Notes under the pieces: model-generated
Told to the model about the DNA's origin: nothing
Seen by the model: only the letters and a program-made list of their open reading frames with translations
Databases searched by the model: none
In this document: one piece after another, positions 5,243-62,625 of the stretch
How the letters are laid out: each line of letters begins with the position of its first letter
Numbering within the stretch: position 1 is the first letter of the stretch
NCBI GenBank assembly: GCA_038496445.1
Contig: JALMLS010000183.1
Coordinates: forward strand, 62,001 to 126,000
Length of the DNA stretch: 64,000 bases
Origin: Trichosphaerium sp. ATCC 40318
Lineage: Eukaryota; Protista; Tubulinea
Direction: 5' to 3'
Translations under genes and position numbers: made by a program

Positions 5243-6079
5243 GTTACATATATCAGACACATGTATTATATATGTGGTAGCCACTAGACAACAAGCTTTG
5301 TGTTTTTGACACGTGACATGTAAATAGTACCTTTTCAATTTTTAGTACTTTACTTTCTTGGTGTTGCAGTTACTGTAGTAATTGCAATGTCATGACTGTT
5401 GTTGTAATAAATTAAGTCACTTGATATTACTATGAATCGTGTTGTTACCAAATATTGTGGATACAAACTGAGAGTGCTATTCGCCCTATATGCAATGTTT
5501 TTGCATGTAGAAGGACAACAATAACTTGAGTCTTTGGGTTTTGCAACACAAAAAAGGAGCACCGTTTACCCTCAACTTTGGAAAAGCAACATTTTAGCCA
5601 TAAGTGTTACTATACTAAAGTTGATTGGCAACTTGTTTCTTACTAAGGCGAGTAAGGAATCGATTTGCTTTTTTTAATAGAAATAAGATTGATTCACTCA
5701 CCTTAGATTGATTGCGTATTAAGTTACCACTTAAACAACTAGTGTGTAATAATATGGACACTCAAAGAAGGATATTAATCATCTATCAGTGTGTTACGGC
5801 ACCTTGAGTGCCAAATGATTGATACCTAATTTACACTGTAGAATAGTGCCAAGTTTTGTGCAATTTCTACAATTTCGACAAATTGTAAACTTTGTGCAAA
5901 ACTGTGCTGCCCCACTGTTCATTAAGTGTTCATGTATATGCATTACATCTCAGACTCTCATGGAGACCCAATTTGAGTCTCGGATCATTACCTGAATACG
6001 TTTATGTTACATCTATGTCGGTTGCCTTATCTGGTCTCTTTTTTTCCGTTTTTTTGAAACGACAACCGTATTTGCATCA

Positions 6080-7461
6080 ATGTCACAGCTTGAACTTCTC
6101 CCAGCTGAAGTACTCCTTAAAATAACAACGAATGGATTGGGTGCAGACGATTGTTGTAAATTAACAGCAGTGTCAGGGTTTTTCAATCGTTTGATAGACG
6201 ACAAGGGCTTTTGGCCGTTTATGTGTCGTAATACAACACTTCCAAGAGAGAATGTACCAAAAACCAATAAAAACGCACGTAAACGCTAATATATATCATT
6301 TTAACACGTTTTAACGCGTTTTAGGTGACAACAGCTCTTGAATTCGCTATGCAGTACGATCATTCGTCAATAGCAAGCTCAGTGATTTCTGCTTGTATGG
6401 GAAACAAGAGAATAGGCATTGAAACAGTTTTGAACATCACAAAGTGTGCAACACAAGTTTTAAGTTCCGAAAAAAATGTACTCGACCTTGATGCTCCAAT
6501 AACAATTGTCGGCGATATCCATGGACAACTCGCTGATTTGATGCACATACTAACAAATGAGGGTATGCCTCCACATACAAACTATCTATTTTTAGGAAAC
6601 TACATAAACAGCATGTAAGTACAAAGTTTCAAAAAAACCCGAAAATGTGTTTTTTCTTTCTTTCTTCTTCTTTGTATTGACTCTTTTAACATTGGGTTTA
6701 GAACACGATATTCCATTCGTACTCTACTGTTGTTGTTTGGTTTGAAGGTTAAATACCCTAAACACGTGCATATTCTTCGTGGGAATCGTGAATCTCGAGC
6801 ACATTCACGTGCTAAAGGGTTTGTGGGTGAATGTCAACGGTTGTATGATCAAACTGTATGGAGTGAGTTCTGTATCGCTTTTGATACAATGCCCTTGATG
6901 GCAATAGTTGGAAACCAGTATGTGTGTATACACTCAGGTTTGAGCCCATCGCTTGATACTACTGCGCAGACACAGAGCATAGACAGGTTTCAAGATGTAC
7001 CTATTGAAGGACCTATGTGTGACCTGTTATGGGCTGACCCAAATCATAAACCAGGATATGGTCTCACCGATAGAGGCTATGGTAAGAATTCAACAACAAA
7101 AGGATGTATTTGATTATTTACACGTGGACTAGGCTACACTTTTGGCCCGGATGTGACGCAAAGGTATTTGACTGTGAATAATTTACAGGCGATTATTTGC
7201 TCTCATCGTAGTCGCTTGGAAGGATATGAATTGATCCAGAACGGACATACTCATGCGATCTTTAGTGCATCAGATTTTTGCTACACAGGTGGCAACAAAG
7301 GTACGTTGTGATCAATCTTCACGATGCGAAAAAAACAGTTTTGATGTTAATTTTTTTTAGGTGCTGTGTTACATGTCGCAGATGATTTGAGTATTACTCC
7401 CCACATACATGAAATAACAAAAACCCAACGTGAAGCATTTCATAACAATAACCAACCATAA
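6080..7461 (+). CDS. F-box + PPP-family (PP2A/PP4/PP6-like) phosphatase domain, predicted catalytically dead
   Basis: N-terminal LELLPAEVLLKI..LTAVSGFFNRL..FW; GDIHGQ, FLGNYIN, LRGNRE, CIHSGLSP, GPMCDLLWADP, YTFGPDV, CSHR, FSASDFC. Confidence 0.88.
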
Positions 7462-7835
7462 AGCGAAGGTGGTAGAAAAGGCTAAGGTTGTTATTCGAAG
7501 AGCAGTAAATTGTCCTAAATAAATTATAAAGATATTGGCTTACTTCTGAGCGTTGTTTAGTTGTGCACAAGGCCTGAGGACATGTGTTTTTTGTTAATCA
7601 GTGGGGTTAATGAAATCATAACAGGTTCTTTAACACCTAAATAAATTGTAAAGTCCAAGTACTTTACCTAATCGATTGACGTTTGACTACAAAAACTGCC
7701 ACCGAAAAGGGTAAAAAGATTGAATTTATTTATGAGTGATGTTATTTTTTTGGAAAGTGGGTATTTGACAAGTCAAAGTTCGTCAGAGTACTTAATCGGA
7801 TCGCATGTAGCTGAGTCAACCCACTGTTTGTCCTT

Positions 7836-11143: not shown

Positions 11144-12528
11144 CTAAAGCACTTTATTCAACATTGAACCCATCACTAAACGGGCAGGCTCTGAGAAAGA
11201 TTCTTCAACTATTTTGGTAATCAATTCTTGTTAACACATGCATAACGAGTCTTACCACCGCGACCAGTTATAGCGCTGGTTTCAAAGTATGAACAATTCA
11301 AACTTTTAGCAACCGCCATTGCTTCAACACAGTCTACCTAAGGAGGAAATATAACGCTTATGAATAGTACAGTAGCTGTATAGTAGTAACTTACCTGTCT
11401 TGGACCATTCAAATCAATTTTATTGCCAATAAGAACAAATTTCAAGCTTCTTTGAGAAATTTCTTTGGCATAAGATTTAGCAATCTCAAAGCTCTCAACA
11501 TTGTTTACATCAAAAACGATCATGGCACTTTGCCTAACACTATGAGCAATAACAGTCTATTTACAAAATTATCAACTATAACAATACCAATACATCAAAA
11601 CACTTACATGAAACCTTTCAGCTCCAGAACAGTCATTGATTGTAATTCTTACTTTTTTACCATCAACCCTCATTATTGCACGTTCAACCTTTGTAATTGT
11701 CATCAAGCAAATCCTACTAGTGTAAACAGTACCTCTAATACAATAGTTTCTGAATAAGTTAATAGAGTTTTAAAGTGTTTAAGGTAGTGTGTAAGAGCAC
11801 TCTTGCCTAGCATATGGTTACTCAAAGCTTAAATTCATTAAAATGTTACCACTGAAAGAGTTGCCTACCACATAAGTTGTAATGCTTGTATCATACTGTT
11901 TGCTAAATTATAGAGGTTAATTAAGACCAAAAGAAAGTACTAGTACTATAGCATATCCTCCCATTTTTGTTTATCACGCCATAGCAAGTGTGCACATGTC
12001 AGCATGAACTTGGTTTCATTGTGTATGAAATGAATGCTATTGTCCTTTATCCTATATACTGCATGCAATGATATAGAATGTGTAACAACCTACTGGTACT
12101 GTTAACAGAGTATGCTATAACGAGATTTGGACATGTACCTTCCTCTTTGATGAGTTGTATATAGTAAGTTGATGATCTGTCACAGATACAAATACTGTTG
12201 ATCTTCTAGTCAACCACGACAATAGCTATTGTTCAGGTTAGCTAACTTAAAAGCGTTTGGTAAATTAACGAACGTGGCTTTGTGTTTCTTGTTTTGGCCT
12301 TGTAATATGTAAAATAGACCCTCAACACGTGAGGTAACGTGATGACTGATTCTTTTCTACAACATTGTTTGTACAAACAATATTTAACCTCTTTTTACGC
12401 ACTCTCAGTGTAGGTACTTCGGAAATTACGCATTGCCACCTTTTACAGACCCGCATCAACACAACAAGCCGTACTGGAGGGAAACCCTCGAGAATATAAA
12501 CAAACACATCCAAAATTAATGTATCCAT
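11144..12528 (-). CDS. F-box + PH-like domain + Ras/Rab-family small GTPase fusion
   Basis: F-box MDTLILDVFVYIL..LMRVCKRWQCVI; PH-like RRSTVFVSVTDHQLTIYNSSK..SISLHAV..FMLTC..QKWEDML; G1 VVGNSFSGKS, G3 DCSGAE, G4 GNKID, G5 ETSA. Confidence 0.82.
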
Positions 12529-55496: not shown

Positions 55497-58400
55497 ATGC
55501 AAAGTAGCTCACCATACGCAATGGCGTACTCGTGTGCAGTTATCCTATTTATTACAGTGTTTGCAACTGTCGCAAATGCAACACAAAGCTGCCCTGATCA
55601 TCATACGCTAACAACAGTTACCTGGGACGAAAACAACTTCGCAGCTGGTCTTATTATCAGCGATCAATACGAACAGTCTCATCACTTTACTGGCGAATCA
55701 TTTGGTACGTTTCTTTTTTAGAAGCGTCTAGTTTTTCTTCTTGCAACTATAAACTCAACAAGTAATCCTTAAAAGAGAGAAAACAACACAACCTAAACGT
55801 GGTATTCAAATCCTTCTTGAAGGAGGAAAAAACAAAAAAAAAAAATTGTGTTCGTTTTGCAACAAATTGTTTTCAAACTTTCCATTTTCAATTTCAGACT
55901 TTGGTTTTTTTTAAAAAAGGTTGTTTATTAATTGTTTGTTTTGTATAGACCAAAGTGATCACCCTCTAATGTTGTTCGATTCTGAAAACCCAACTGGCGG
56001 TGACTGGGATCTTGGTACGCCGAATAACCGATATTCAGGCCCTGGTGTCGGAAGCGGTGGTAGGTCTAACAGGTACGCAGTTTTCCGATTCAAATTGAAA
56101 TTCCAGCACAAAAGTATCGTCACTGATTAGTTTTTAGAGTCCCCTTGGGAAACTTGCTCATCATATCAGCTGATGGAAGCACACAAGATCCAAACGACCA
56201 CGGTGTACGTACAATCTAATTTTACCTTGAATGTTGCGCAGTTTTTTCACTTTTTTTTCTTATTTTTCTTGTGTTTTAATTTTTGACTTAGAGCGGTGGT
56301 CACTTTAACCTATACTTCGACAAAACCGTAAAGATTCTAACCATGGTTGTTGTTGATGCTGATAAGAACGAAGAGATTGAAGCCGAATTATACGATAAAT
56401 CAGGCAACAGAATTACTACAGTTGATGCTGACGATTTGGGTGGTAACAGTGTACAAACATTGGAAATCTACACATCCAACGTTCGAAGAATGAAAGTCGG
56501 AGCCACGAATTCTTTCGGTATTGACACTATCAAATATTGTGTACCAGACTACTGTCAGCTTCGTACCCAAACACAAGGTGGATGGGGTAATACCTGTAAT
56601 GGAAATAACCCTGGATGCTACAGAGATGAGATGTTCGGAAGCTGCTTTGCATCAGGACTTGTTGTTGGTAGCAACTCTGGATACACCTTGAAACTCACAA
56701 GCGCTGCTGCTGTTAGAAACTTTCTTCCTGCAGGTGGTCCATCAAAGGCACTGTACGTTCAAGTGTAATACATACTGACAAACAACTAAATGTCTTCTTA
56801 CTTAGAACGCAAAACCTTGTGAATCCAAACAACTACAAAAACAATTTGGCCGCACAAACTGTAGCTTTGACGCTCAGTGTAACTTTTGATTTGTGTGATT
56901 CAGGTTTTGGTGACGATAGCTCCAACTTGGAAGACTCTGTCGTAATAAGCGGAGATTGCGCTGGTATGACAGTCAGGCAAGTCCTCGACGAAGCCAACGC
57001 TGTACTCGGTACGCTTACTTTATGTCAATTGGCTGTAACCTAACTCTTTCACCTCTAGGCGGTGCAGGAACAATGAGTGCATCCACTATTAAGGGCTGTG
57101 CTGACTTGATAAATAACAATTATGTAGACGGTACAACCAACAACCACGACCTAGACTGTGATGCCCCTACCATCCCACCAACGACAATGCCACCAACGAC
57201 AGCTCCACCAACGACAATGCCTCCTACTACAATGCCTCCAACAACAGCTCCACCAACGACAATGCCACCAACTACATTGCCACCTACTACAGCTCCTCCT
57301 ACGACATTGCCTCCAACAACATTGCCACCAACTACAATGCCACCTACTACAGCTCCTCCTACGACAATGCCTCCTACTACATTGCCACCAACTACATTGC
57401 CTCCAACAACAGCTCCACCAACGACAATGCCACCAACTACAGCTCCACCAACGACAATGCCTCCTACTACAATGCCTCCAACAACAGCTCCACCAACGAC
57501 AATGCCACCTACTACATTGCCACCTACTACAGCTCCTCCTACGACATTGCCTCCAACAACATTGCCTCCTACTACATTGCCTCCTACTACAGCTCCTCCA
57601 ACGACAATGCCACCAACTACAATGCCTCCAACAACAGCTCCTCCTACGACAATACCGCCAACAACATTGCCGCCTACGACATTGCCTCCAACTACAATGC
57701 CACCTACTACAGCTCCTCCTACGACATTGCCGCCAACAACATTGCCACCTACTACATTGCCTCCTACTACAGCTCCTCCTACGACAATGCCTCCAACAAC
57801 ACTACCACCTACGACATTGCCTCCAACAACAACGGCACCAACTACTGTACCTACAGATGCACCTACTGTATCACCAACAGTACCAAGCACATGTCCAAAT
57901 GGATCGATAGCTGTGATGATCACATTTGATGATCTGAATCGCGTCGCTGGAGACATTGTTACAGATCAGTACTCTCCAAACTTTCTGACATTTGTATCAA
58001 CCGGCTCAGACCAACTGATAGTCGAGGATTCAAGCAATCCACAACTCAGCCCTAACTTTGCAACACCTGGCTTCGGACCAAACAACGGGTACGTATTCGT
58101 AGTGTTTATTCTTTTTTGCCTATATTCTGACTGCCCTGTAGTGTTGGCCTCAACAATGTTCTCACTTTGACCAACGCTGGTTCAGCCAGTACAGGATCAT
58201 ACCAACTCAGATTTTCAGAACCAGTGCTATTCCAAGCCATCTCTGTTATTGATATTGATCTTGAACAAACGTGGACAATTTCCTTCTTTGACAGCGACGA
58301 TACCATTATTGCGACCATCCCTGCTCTAGAATTTGGTGAAAACAGCTTCCAGCGTATTGAACTTTTCAACGCTGTTAATGTGTCCTATGCCATAATAGAG

Positions 58401-59598: not shown

Positions 59599-60412
59599 AT
59601 GGCTAGTAGTTTTCAGCTAACGATACGGATTCTGTGCGCTGAACGCAATAAATAGCAAATAATAAAGGGATTCGTATCTTTTTTTAAATTGTTTGTTTTT
59701 TCTTCACTTTGTTTTTTGGTCTTCTTTCTTTCTAATTTCGTTCTACAGACTCGTATGTCTCCCTGCGGATATCCAACTTGCGATCATACATACCGATTTT
59801 GAAATAAATAAAAAATGGGCTCTTCTTTGTTATGGCACAGCGACGAGCACAAGGTTTAACGCTAAATTGGATAAATATGGCACATGGGAGGCACGTGATA
59901 AACGTGGAAGACTAAGACGCCGTGTGCACTTTAATTCGGTTGGATTGAAAGAAGGAACATACAAAAGTTGGCACAGAAAGGGAACGCTTAAAGTGTGGGC
60001 TAGGTATCACCTAGGACAAAAACGGGGGAAATATGAAAGTTTTTACAGCAATACAAATCGAGAAATACTATCTCACTACAAGTACAACGTCAAACATGGT
60101 CCTTACAAGACATTCTTTCGGAATGGTGATCCCATGGTAGAGTGTAATTACTATAAGGGCAGGTTTCATGGCCAATATAGGCAATGGAATAAGGAAGGAC
60201 ACTTGATTGGCTATATTGAATTCAAAAGAGGTAAAAGACACGGTTTGTATAAAAGATGGGAAAATGGAATTTTAACAGCACATGCCTTATATGAACGTGG
60301 CGTCCTTGTTCGTGATAGAGCTATGAAGAAAAGTGCTGGTCAATCAATGGCTAATATTAGTCCGAGGGAATTTAGGAGGTATGGTTACAGGACATCACTA
60401 CGACACACGTAG
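59599..60412 (+). CDS. MORN-variant (YwqK-like) repeat protein with a degenerate N-terminal F-box-like motif
   Basis: LVCLPADIQLAI; repeats GLKEGTYKSWHRKG, GQKRGKYESFYSN, KHGPYKTFFRNG, GRFHGQYRQWNKEG. Confidence 0.75.
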
Positions 60413-60682
60413 TCATTAGGCGTTTTTTATGGCTGTACAAATGTAAATAAAAAAAGTGTGAATTTCGAGACTAGGAACTGGCACTCCGCTGAGCTACACC
60501 ATCAAATGCACAGATCGAAAGGCCCTTATAATTTGGTCATTCTGATTAATTACTGCCTAGTTAATGAAGTATTTGTGCACCGTTATGGCGCCCTATTTGC
60601 AGTCTGTGCTTAAACATTGTTGAACAGTGTGGACTCTAAAACATCTTCTCATTCATTTTATTGGAGGCAAGGAGTTTCAGTA

Positions 60683-62625
60683 ATGGCGGCACTCAGTGAC
60701 CTCGAGCCAATGCGGATACGCGACCTTGTCGACTACATAACAAGCGTTGAAGCTACACGTACGTTTTGGTTTTTTCAGTTCAGGTTCTTTCATCGCATCC
60801 ACACCAAACGGTTTTATCAATCCCTGCGAGCTTTGGTTTTTAAACAAACTACATTTCTGCAAATGGTGTTTTTCTCCCTGACGTCCCCCTTTTCATTACC
60901 CAGCTATCCACCGTGTAACTCTCTATGCGTAGCCGAGTGTAGGCAAGCTGTTGTTCTAACTATGGATTATTACACAACCAAACATAGGCTCCTGTCCAAG
61001 GTGTTCGACGGGTATGCGCACGTGTTTATTTCATGGGCTTCCAAACTTATTTTTGTTTGCGAGACATTTTGTAATTGGTTAAATAGATTCCTTAATACCG
61101 GAGACGCAAAGAAACGTGATTTACTCCTAGAATTTTTATTCGCATGGTGGCATACACGCCGACGTGAACTTAAAAACGACACCAAATTTACAGACCGTAT
61201 TAAAGCTTTTGCAGCAGAACTGCTGGAACGTGAAGACGTGCAAGAATATGGCATGAGAGTAACCAGACAGGTACGATACACCCGCAGCATCGTATTCGTT
61301 TTGAGCGATTGTTCCATTTGTGTGGAAAATCAATAAAACATCACGTGATTTTCACGTGATCATAAAAAATAATCTAACATATTTTAGATGATCACTGCTC
61401 CTTTAAAAAGGTTTGGTAGTAAAAACACAAGGCTTCAGAGGCGAGTTGTCGCCGTCAAAGTGACCGATTCTTTGCGAAGTATTCAACAAAAAAAAATTGG
61501 TTTGGATTATTGAAGTTTACAAATATTTTAGTTTCACGCTTCACGTGGCGAAATTTGAACGCAGAAAGACTTGCAATGTACCTCACAATGGTTGATCAGG
61601 AACTCACAAATGATATAAGAAACGCAGACTTGCTACAAGGGTATAAAATTGTCTTACAATTGAATTGTACTTGCTTATAACCTGGTTAGACGCTGGAACC
61701 TAAAAAAAGGCCACAATGTAAAAGCATCGGCAGTGCGTGTTCACAGGCTAATAGACTGGTCCAACATGGTACAACGTGCAATATTCATTGATTAGCAGTA
61801 AATATTTATTGTGTTTTAGATAGGAGATTGGGTGGCTACAGTTATTTGTATGGCTCCAAAAACAAAACAAAGAGCTTTTGCAATCTCGTACTTTGTTCGG
61901 GTTTTAAAAGTACGTAGCATACGATATACAATATAAATAATCCCTTACGGTCGATTAGCACTTGCGACACTTCAATAGCTTTAATTGTTTGTTTGTGGTG
62001 TGGTCTGCATTATCTAGCTTAGCCGTACAATTCCTAAGAAGGTGTGTTCCTATTTTTCAATCGCTTTTACTGATATCTCTCAGAGAATGGAAAGAGCTCT
62101 CTTCAGAACTACGTGATGTCTGGGACGCCGTGAATGTGGTACTGAGCATGTCCGGTAACTTTCAAAACTACAGAGATACTATTGATGCAGCGCAACCTCC
62201 TGCCATACCATACCTAGGTACACATTCACTTGGCATAAATCCATCATTTCTAACAATTTACTTTAGGATTGCTACTACAAGATATCATACACGCGGAAAC
62301 CGATGAAACATTTGTAACGCAGCCATCAGAATGTAGGCGATCAAAGTACCGCAAACGTATTAATTTGAGCAAAATGAGCACTATTGCCACAACGTTGAGT
62401 ACAAGGGAAAAGAGTCTGGATGACTACCGATGGCTTACAGACCTATCACCAATTACTGGATCGTACTTTCTTCACTTGAACAATCACGAGGAGGTACTTG
62501 GTACTGAGGCTCTAAAACAAAGAGTAAAATCATTACCAAAGGAGTCAGTATCTAAAAGACAAGCACACAGAATAAGACGCACGTGGAGTTTATCACGTGT
62601 CAAAAAGCATAAAGTGTACACGTGA
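60683..62625 (+). CDS. Ras guanine nucleotide exchange factor (REM + CDC25 domains)
   Basis: LVDYIT..VLTMDYYTT..LL; WVATVI..RAFAISYFVRV..FNSFNCLFVVWSALSS; SGNFQNYR..PAIPYLGLLLQDI. Confidence 0.88.

Follow-up and report, generated by a model that had tools for sequence, protein, structure and literature searches.

A putative F-box–pseudophosphatase fusion of the PP2A type in the amoeba Trichosphaerium sp.

PPP-family pseudophosphatases have been recognised only recently, and to our knowledge none is wired to the ubiquitin system. The first to be presented as such (in 2023), PfPPP8 of Plasmodium falciparum, is an essential protein with GNLINRG in its PPP domain, which its authors infer to have lost phosphatase activity and propose to be a binder of phosphoproteins (PMC10317984). 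A link between a dead phosphatase and the SCF (Skp1–cullin–F-box) ubiquitin ligase is described for STYX, which is reported to regulate SCF by binding the F-box protein FBXW7 (PMC5852641, as cited in PMC9485057). Here we describe a gene at positions 6080–7461 of a 64,000-nucleotide stretch of the genome of Trichosphaerium sp. ATCC 40318 (GenBank assembly GCA_038496445.1, contig JALMLS010000183.1, positions 62,001 to 126,000 of the forward strand; hereafter the window). The gene, one of a family of paralogs in this amoeba, joins an F-box to a PPP-type phosphatase domain that is predicted to be catalytically disabled.

Like PfPPP8, the window protein has Asn in place of both Asp residues of GDxxDRG in an otherwise intact PPP domain, reading GNYINSI, with GNYVNRG in most of its paralogs. 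Unlike PfPPP8, it additionally lacks Arg89 and His118 (numbering of the PP2A catalytic subunit, PP2A C). PfPPP8 carries no F-box, belongs to another PPP branch and has homologs across Apicomplexa and beyond, whereas the amoeba family appears nearest to PP2A. Since the closest relatives we found are PP2A-type, the amoeba family likely has an origin independent of PfPPP8. STYX shares with the window protein a catalytically dead phosphatase functionally tied to an SCF F-box protein; it differs in having a tyrosine/dual-specificity fold and in binding and inhibiting the F-box protein in trans, whereas the amoeba PPP pseudoenzyme has its own F-box in cis.

Two further comparisons frame the locus. 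The PP2A catalytic subunit (PPP2CA, of the PP2A/PP4/PP6/PPG1 clade) has the same fold and shares GDxHG, the His of HGG, RG, the His of RAH and DLLW with the window protein, which differs from these apparent closest relatives by its added N-terminal F-box, five substituted residues (D85, D88, R89, H118 and Y265) and the absence of the DYFL tail. In overall layout the protein resembles the phospho-degron-reading WD40 receptors FBXW7/Cdc4 and beta-TrCP, where an N-terminal F-box is followed by a C-terminal protein-interaction domain, and the likeness would extend to phosphorylation-dependent recognition if the dead cleft binds phosphate. In contrast to these receptors, it would recognise its substrates through a disabled phosphatase fold and not through a WD40, LRR or Kelch domain.

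Gene structure and the two domains

The gene model is a single open frame of 370 codons on the forward strand, running from the ATG at 6080 to the TAA at 7459–7461 through five exons and four GT–AG introns (Table 1). Upstream, the frame meets a stop at 5993 and contains no ATG before 6080, and the position of the start codon is conserved in the copies on contigs 25 and 144. An earlier reading of the letters alone (the sequence-only reading) had placed an intact frame at exactly these coordinates, and this stands. The published draft genome measures 70.87 Mb, with 37.7% guanine plus cytosine (GC) and a mean intron length of 75 bp. An Rfam search of the window gave no matches.

Either of two overlapping introns can follow exon 1, and the F-box and the phosphatase domain share one frame under both solutions. 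We favour the one at 6254–6324 because the sister copy on contig 25 must use the same sites: it retains the GTACCA donor and the TTTTAG acceptor, and its GT at the other donor is mutated. The alternative intron has a donor that corresponds by homology to the one in the distant paralogs. A conserved stretch just past the GTACCA donor was considered as a coding extension of exon 1 and ruled out, as the divergence of intron 1 resembles that of the other introns and the alternative donor is missing from the contig 25 copy.

Exon 1 matches the Pfam family F-box-like (PF12937) over residues 5–50, scoring 27.3 bits where the cut-off is 24.3. The F-box exon of 8/8 paralogs matches the same family, above the cut-off in 6/8, and L7, P8, E10, I15, L20, L28, F44 and W45 (LPxE..I...L...FW) are invariant across all of them. 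Skp1 genes were located in the Trichosphaerium genome on contigs 137, 57 and 88/430. A complex prediction with the F-box exon and the two Skp1 exons of contig 137 returned neither support nor counter-evidence.

Exons 2 and 3 match Metallophos (PF00149, calcineurin-like phosphoesterase), in agreement with the F-box plus phosphatase architecture first proposed from the letters, and all three core exons (2, 3 and 4) can be aligned to PP2A, PP1, PP2B or PP5 chains in the PDB. Residue numbers are those of PP2A C, carried over from an alignment to a representative PP2A sequence and from exon-wise alignments to solved PPP structures. Retained residues are Asp57, His59, Asn117, His167, Arg214 and His241. 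Four others are altered: Asp85, the bridging metal ligand, to Asn; Asp88 to Asn; His118, the general acid, to Arg; and Tyr265 to Phe. The phosphate-binding Arg89 has no equivalent. The LFLGNYIN of exon 2 aligns with the LFLGDYVD of calcineurin, PP2A and PP1, as does GDIHGQ with its counterpart, so that GNYINSI stands where GDxVDRG is expected (D85N, D88N, Arg89 lost); in GNRE the metal-ligand Asn of GNHE is kept and His118 is Arg. The altered motifs (GNYINSI, GNRE and SASDF) and the kept ones (GDIHG and DLLWADP) are all found as the sequence-only reading listed them. The residue losses, with the drift of catalytic positions among the paralogs described below, predict that the phosphatase domain is catalytically disabled, as that reading had held.

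The same reading called the phosphatase part PP2A-like, and this is borne out in part. Exon 3 has its best PDB score, 130 bits, against human PP2A C residues 92–215, and its best matches among 1.84 billion protein representatives are animal and plant PP2A catalytic subunits at about 50% identity. Exon 2 alone, however, scores highest against calcineurin (PP2B), slightly above PP2A, and exon 4 against PP5; when the family profile of exon 2 was used in a word search, PP4 and PPG1 fragments ranked first. Overall identity to the PP2A catalytic subunit is 39%. The DYFL tail of PP2A/PP4/PP6 is absent from the window protein, which ends in ...QREAFHNNNQP, and from all paralogs. On these alignments the label seems reasonable for the core, but the protein as a whole is no ordinary PP2A-type subunit. 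Canonical PP2A-type catalytic genes coexist in the genome: contig 110 has one with 62–82% identity to PP2A C, and contigs 2 and 109 have further copies. The F-box–PPP family is an addition to them and not a replacement.

Table 1. Features of the F-box–PPP gene (positions in the window)
Feature	Position	Strand	Details
Exon 1: start codon and F-box	6080–6253	+	58 codons in favoured model; to 6278 in alternative model; Pfam F-box-like
Intron 1	6254–6324	+	71 nt, phase 0, GTACCA...TTTTAG; from listing of in-frame GT–AG pairs
Intron 1, alternative	6279–6334	+	56 nt, GTAAAC...ACAACAG; also in frame
Exon 2: PPP-fold N-terminal helices, GDIHG, first part of degenerate GNYINSI (from 6595)	6325–6614	+	Pfam Metallophos; PDB alignments
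GDIHG	6511–6525	+	Residues 121–125; PPP signature GDxHG present
GNYINSI	6595–6702	+	Split by intron 2; in place of GDxVDRG
Intron 2	6615–6701	+	87 nt, phase 2, GTAAGT...TTTAG
Exon 3: PPP core with GNRE, IHSG, DLLWADP, DRG (from 7069)	6702–7081	+	Pfam Metallophos, E 1.3e-12; PP2A C alignment
GNRE	6781–6792	+	In place of GNHE
IHSG	6928–6939	+	Motif position
DLLWADP	7021–7041	+	Kept motif
DRGYG	7069–7134	+	Motif position
Intron 3	7082–7132	+	51 nt, phase 1, GTAAGA...ACTAG
Exon 4: GYTFG, CSHR, SASDF with beta12-13 loop	7133–7300	+	PDB alignments to PP5 and PP2A; family alignment
CSHR	7198–7209	+	His241 equivalent
SASDF	7264–7278	+	In place of SAPNY
Intron 4	7301–7360	+	60 nt, phase 1, GTACGT...TTTTAG
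Exon 5: last strand, family-specific C-terminal tail (QR.AFHNNN), TAA, no DYFL	7361–7461	+	Gene model; family alignment
AATAAA, candidate polyadenylation signal	7518–7523	+	57 nt past stop; sequence match only

The paralog family and its divergence

Queried against the whole ~70-Mb genome, the F-box exon found exactly eight loci, and the best eight matches of exon 2 are the same eight. At 8/8 loci the F-box exon lies directly upstream, on the same strand, of PPP-like exons lacking the bridging Asp. The gap between them is an in-frame GT–AG intron of 45–77 nt in 7/8 copies, and in the eighth this intron carries an insertion of about 1.1 kb. The recurrence of the same exon upstream of PPP exons in eight paralogs bears out, at the DNA level, the fusion that the sequence-only reading had proposed. 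The seven paralogs of the window gene are found on contigs 25, 177, 144, 8 (two copies), 109 and 127; the window gene and the contig 25 copy have five exons and the other paralogs six.

Joined coding sequences were used for the alignment, the tree and the ratio of non-synonymous to synonymous substitution rates (dN/dS; Nei–Gojobori, with bootstrap 95% intervals). A PPP phylogeny and a dN/dS comparison with paralogs had both been suggested together with the first description of the gene. In the tree, which omits the apparently truncated minus-strand copy on contig 8 and whose reference set is without PP4, PP6, PP5 and PP2B, the family is monophyletic with support of 99/99 relative to PP2A, PP1-like proteins of giant viruses and two degenerate PPPs that are unrelated to it, and the window gene and the contig 25 copy form a sister pair with support of 100/100.

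Between these sisters, which are 70% identical in amino acid sequence, dN/dS is 0.33 (0.24–0.45). This points to purifying selection, and with an upper bound of 0.45 neutral decay is excluded. Taken by part the ratio is 0.26 for the F-box exon and 0.34 for the remainder, which shows constraint on the F-box as well as on the phosphatase part; two further paralog pairs gave 0.24 and 0.46. Exons of the sister pair are 76–82% identical at the DNA level with zero frame-breaking indels. The introns are 58–69% identical and contain many indels (intron 1, 68% with indels; intron 2, 58%), and the 200 nt flanking the gene on each side are at shuffled background. On these comparisons the two modules are truly fused at the level of the DNA, and the gene is not decaying.

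The pattern of conservation within the phosphatase domain differs between its catalytic and structural positions. Asp85 and Asp88 are lost in all copies, with GN.IN in the window gene and in 7/8 paralogs, and the majority of copies read GNYVNRG and GNIHG. GDIHG is retained in the window gene and the contig 25 copy only, the others having GNIHG, GNIQG or GSIHG; conversely, the Arg of DRG is lost in these two and kept in the other copies as part of GNYVNRG. The GNHE position reads GNRE, GSHE, GNHE, GRHD or GIRE according to the copy. Among six copies only 3/11 catalytic sites are invariant, and two of the three are the shared D85N and D88N. Conserved across the family are LRG, GLSP, DLLW, EGY and the cleft loop SAS..C..C.N. 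Since catalytic positions drift while fold motifs and the cleft loop are conserved, the domain most likely binds rather than hydrolyses.

Some features of the individual loci may be recorded here. On contig 8 (about 542,300–546,700; L005, L019) a pair of family members is arranged head to head, with about 500 bp between them. Of the two, the minus-strand copy seems to stop after its fourth exon and is probably truncated, and intron 1 of the plus-strand copy, about 1.14 kb long, is packed with inverted repeats of the AACCCTAA/TTAGGGTT type, which an inserted element may explain. A Ras-family GTPase exon (L002, 391–747) adjoins the contig 25 paralog and weakly matches positions 11266–11436 of the window, perhaps as the remnant of a shared neighbourhood; a gene at 11144–12528, read as an F-box–PH–small GTPase protein, lies 4 kb downstream of the F-box–PPP gene in the window.

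Proposed function and competing explanations

We propose that the gene encodes a selectively maintained F-box–PP2A-type pseudophosphatase that serves as an SCF receptor, a statement to which, taken as a whole, we assign a probability of roughly 0.55. That this is a real fused pseudoenzyme gene, whatever its role, we hold with considerable confidence. The F-box would dock on Skp1 and so bring the protein into the SCF ligase, where the dead phosphatase domain would act as the substrate-recognition module. The former active-site cleft would most likely hold a ligand that is then ubiquitinated, and this ligand may be a phospho-Ser/Thr protein that is bound without hydrolysis, or one of the usual docking partners of PP2A-type catalytic subunits. 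A receptor role is suggested by the layout of the protein, an N-terminal F-box followed by a C-terminal interaction domain being that of a substrate receptor.

Several points weigh against this proposal. The junction between exons 1 and 2 is ambiguous, with two introns (6254–6324 or 6279–6334) both in frame. Five of the six metal ligands are retained, as is Arg214, and some binding of metal or phosphate, perhaps even a low level of activity, may on this account persist. PPP catalytic subunits are usually under far tighter constraint than a dN/dS of 0.33 indicates. Finally, the databases searched exon by exon yielded no ortholog in another species that would back an old, conserved function.

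In its more specific form the proposal is that the protein reads phospho-degrons: a non-hydrolysing, metal-poor cleft, in which Arg has taken the position of the general-acid His, would grip phospho-Ser/Thr targets, the F-box would pass them to SCF, and the eight paralogs would make up a diversified receptor set. We regard this version as possible but put it forward tentatively.

The dead domain may instead act as a decoy for PP2A C. It would bind the partners of PP2A-type subunits (the A subunit, alpha4/Tap42, TIPRL or B subunits) and the F-box would bring SCF to them, with the outcome that these regulators are degraded or that a PP2A-like holoenzyme becomes a ubiquitin-ligase receptor whose B subunits choose the targets. 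The 50% identity of exon 3 to bona fide PP2A catalytic subunits and the ranking of PP4 and PPG1 first by the exon 2 profile speak for such binding, but overall identity to PP2A C falls to 39% and the DYFL tail is replaced by a family-specific one. Methylation of the DYFL tail controls B-subunit binding in PP2A/PP4/PP6, and its absence would argue mildly against a full PP2A-type holoenzyme. We consider this explanation rather unlikely.

Some F-box proteins work outside SCF, and the protein might do the same, or might regulate Skp1 and SCF by sequestering Skp1 without presenting substrates. STYX offers a precedent, as it is reported to regulate SCF through its binding to FBXW7 (PMC5852641). The canonical receptor layout described above does not favour such a role, nor do the eight diverging paralogs, which look like a diversification of target specificity, and we think it quite unlikely.

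It is also conceivable that the protein is still an enzyme, an atypical phosphatase tethered to SCF, with Skp1, cullin or SCF substrates as its targets and with Asn instead of Asp as a metal ligand. Asn is able to coordinate metal ions, the residues Asp57, His59, Asn117, His167, His241 and Arg214 are kept, and the gene is under purifying selection. However, an Arg has replaced the general-acid His118 and there is no Arg89, and the damage to the catalytic motifs differs from paralog to paralog, so that selection does not appear to be preserving catalysis. Changes at the Asp residues of GDxxDRG are moreover reported to disrupt PPP activity (PMC10317984). Retained catalysis is thus improbable.

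The fusion could be an artefact of the gene model, with a small F-box-only open reading frame (6080–6289) preceding a PPP-like gene or pseudogene that is distinct from it. Read-through of exon 1 does reach a stop at 6287–6289, giving a frame of 69 amino acids, and exon 2 has an internal Met. Against this, the F-box exon stays 45–77 nt from the PPP exons in 7/8 paralogs although synonymous sites are saturated, an in-frame GT–AG intron is available every time, and this type of F-box occurs nowhere else in the genome. A gap of that length is too short for a terminator and a promoter, and intron 1 diverges like the other introns. Two separate genes are therefore very improbable. A decaying duplicate of a PP2A-type gene, as the degenerate catalytic motifs and the truncated appearance of the minus-strand member on contig 8 might suggest, is scarcely credible given 370 codons and splice sites that are intact, a dN/dS of 0.33 with an upper bound of 0.45, and indels that are many in the introns and never frame-breaking in the exons.

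Relatives elsewhere and significance

Relatives were sought exon by exon, with the word search limited to proteins of about exon length. No F-box–PPP relative was found among the 1.84 billion protein representatives, on metagenome and giant-virus contigs or in two profile word searches. With exon 3 the representatives gave PP2A-like matches only, at no more than 53% identity, and the best 150 are without an F-box as judged by the family F-box profile or, for ten N-terminally extended matches, by Pfam. The exon 2 profile word search found fragments of PP4, PPG1 and PP2B only, and that with the F-box profile gave no matches. Metagenome contigs held canonical PPPs and PP2A variants with Asn at position 85, none with an F-box, and the giant-virus contigs held canonical, active PP1-like genes only. 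Nor did the literature searched for F-box together with pseudophosphatase, Metallophos or Trichosphaerium contain a description of an F-box–PPP protein. Exon-wise searches could have overlooked an ortholog with about 40% identity in an amoeba that is little sampled; within the reach of these searches, the family appears specific to the Trichosphaerium lineage.

The F-box is common among viral transfers according to the Trichosphaerium genome paper, where MORN and F-box are the commonest domains of giant-virus-derived genes. A giant-virus origin of the F-box considered here is unsupported, as nothing resembling the F-box exon was present on the giant-virus contigs searched.

Other degenerate or composite PPP genes came to light in the same searches. 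The Asn85 variants of PP2A on metagenome contigs (LFLGNY[IV][DN]..; L039, L041, L054, L057, L059, L067, L070, L072, L080 and L083) keep GNHE, SAPNY and DYFL and are probably from ciliates, because their open reading frames are broken by in-frame TAA/TAG; the single change of Asp85 to Asn recurs in PP2A paralogs of other protists. A 2.6-kb contig from Logan run SRR32481272 (L101) bears a GC-rich eukaryotic PPP-like gene with LFLGAH and LFSAS and no F-box in the 660 nt upstream; its LLHIFNTAGWP stretch resembles the divergent family member on contig 127. The match P0215 resembles the contig 127 copy and sits on a Logan contig that is rich in GC and has no F-box. Among the representatives, P0112 (1121 amino acids) has a Cys-rich, RING-like N-terminus, which Pfam did not confirm, followed by a PPP domain and EF-hands, and may be a further case in nature of a ubiquitin-ligase module joined to a PPP phosphatase.

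Far from the gene, at 56956–58170 and 59693–61336, the window contains a Pro-rich, extensin-like open reading frame of 404 amino acids in a patch of 45% GC and two tandem frames of 239 amino acids with weak matches to the MORN repeat.

If the proposed SCF receptor role is correct, the family would represent a new coupling of phosphorylation state to protein degradation through a disabled PP2A-type recognition domain. Should it read phospho-degrons, it would also add a new class to the substrate-recognition domains of F-box proteins and be a PPP that traps substrates by nature. Natural substrate traps of the PPP type would be of use for finding PPP substrates and their docking rules. For the amoebae, the family would add to the evidence that these organisms build unusual SCF receptors.

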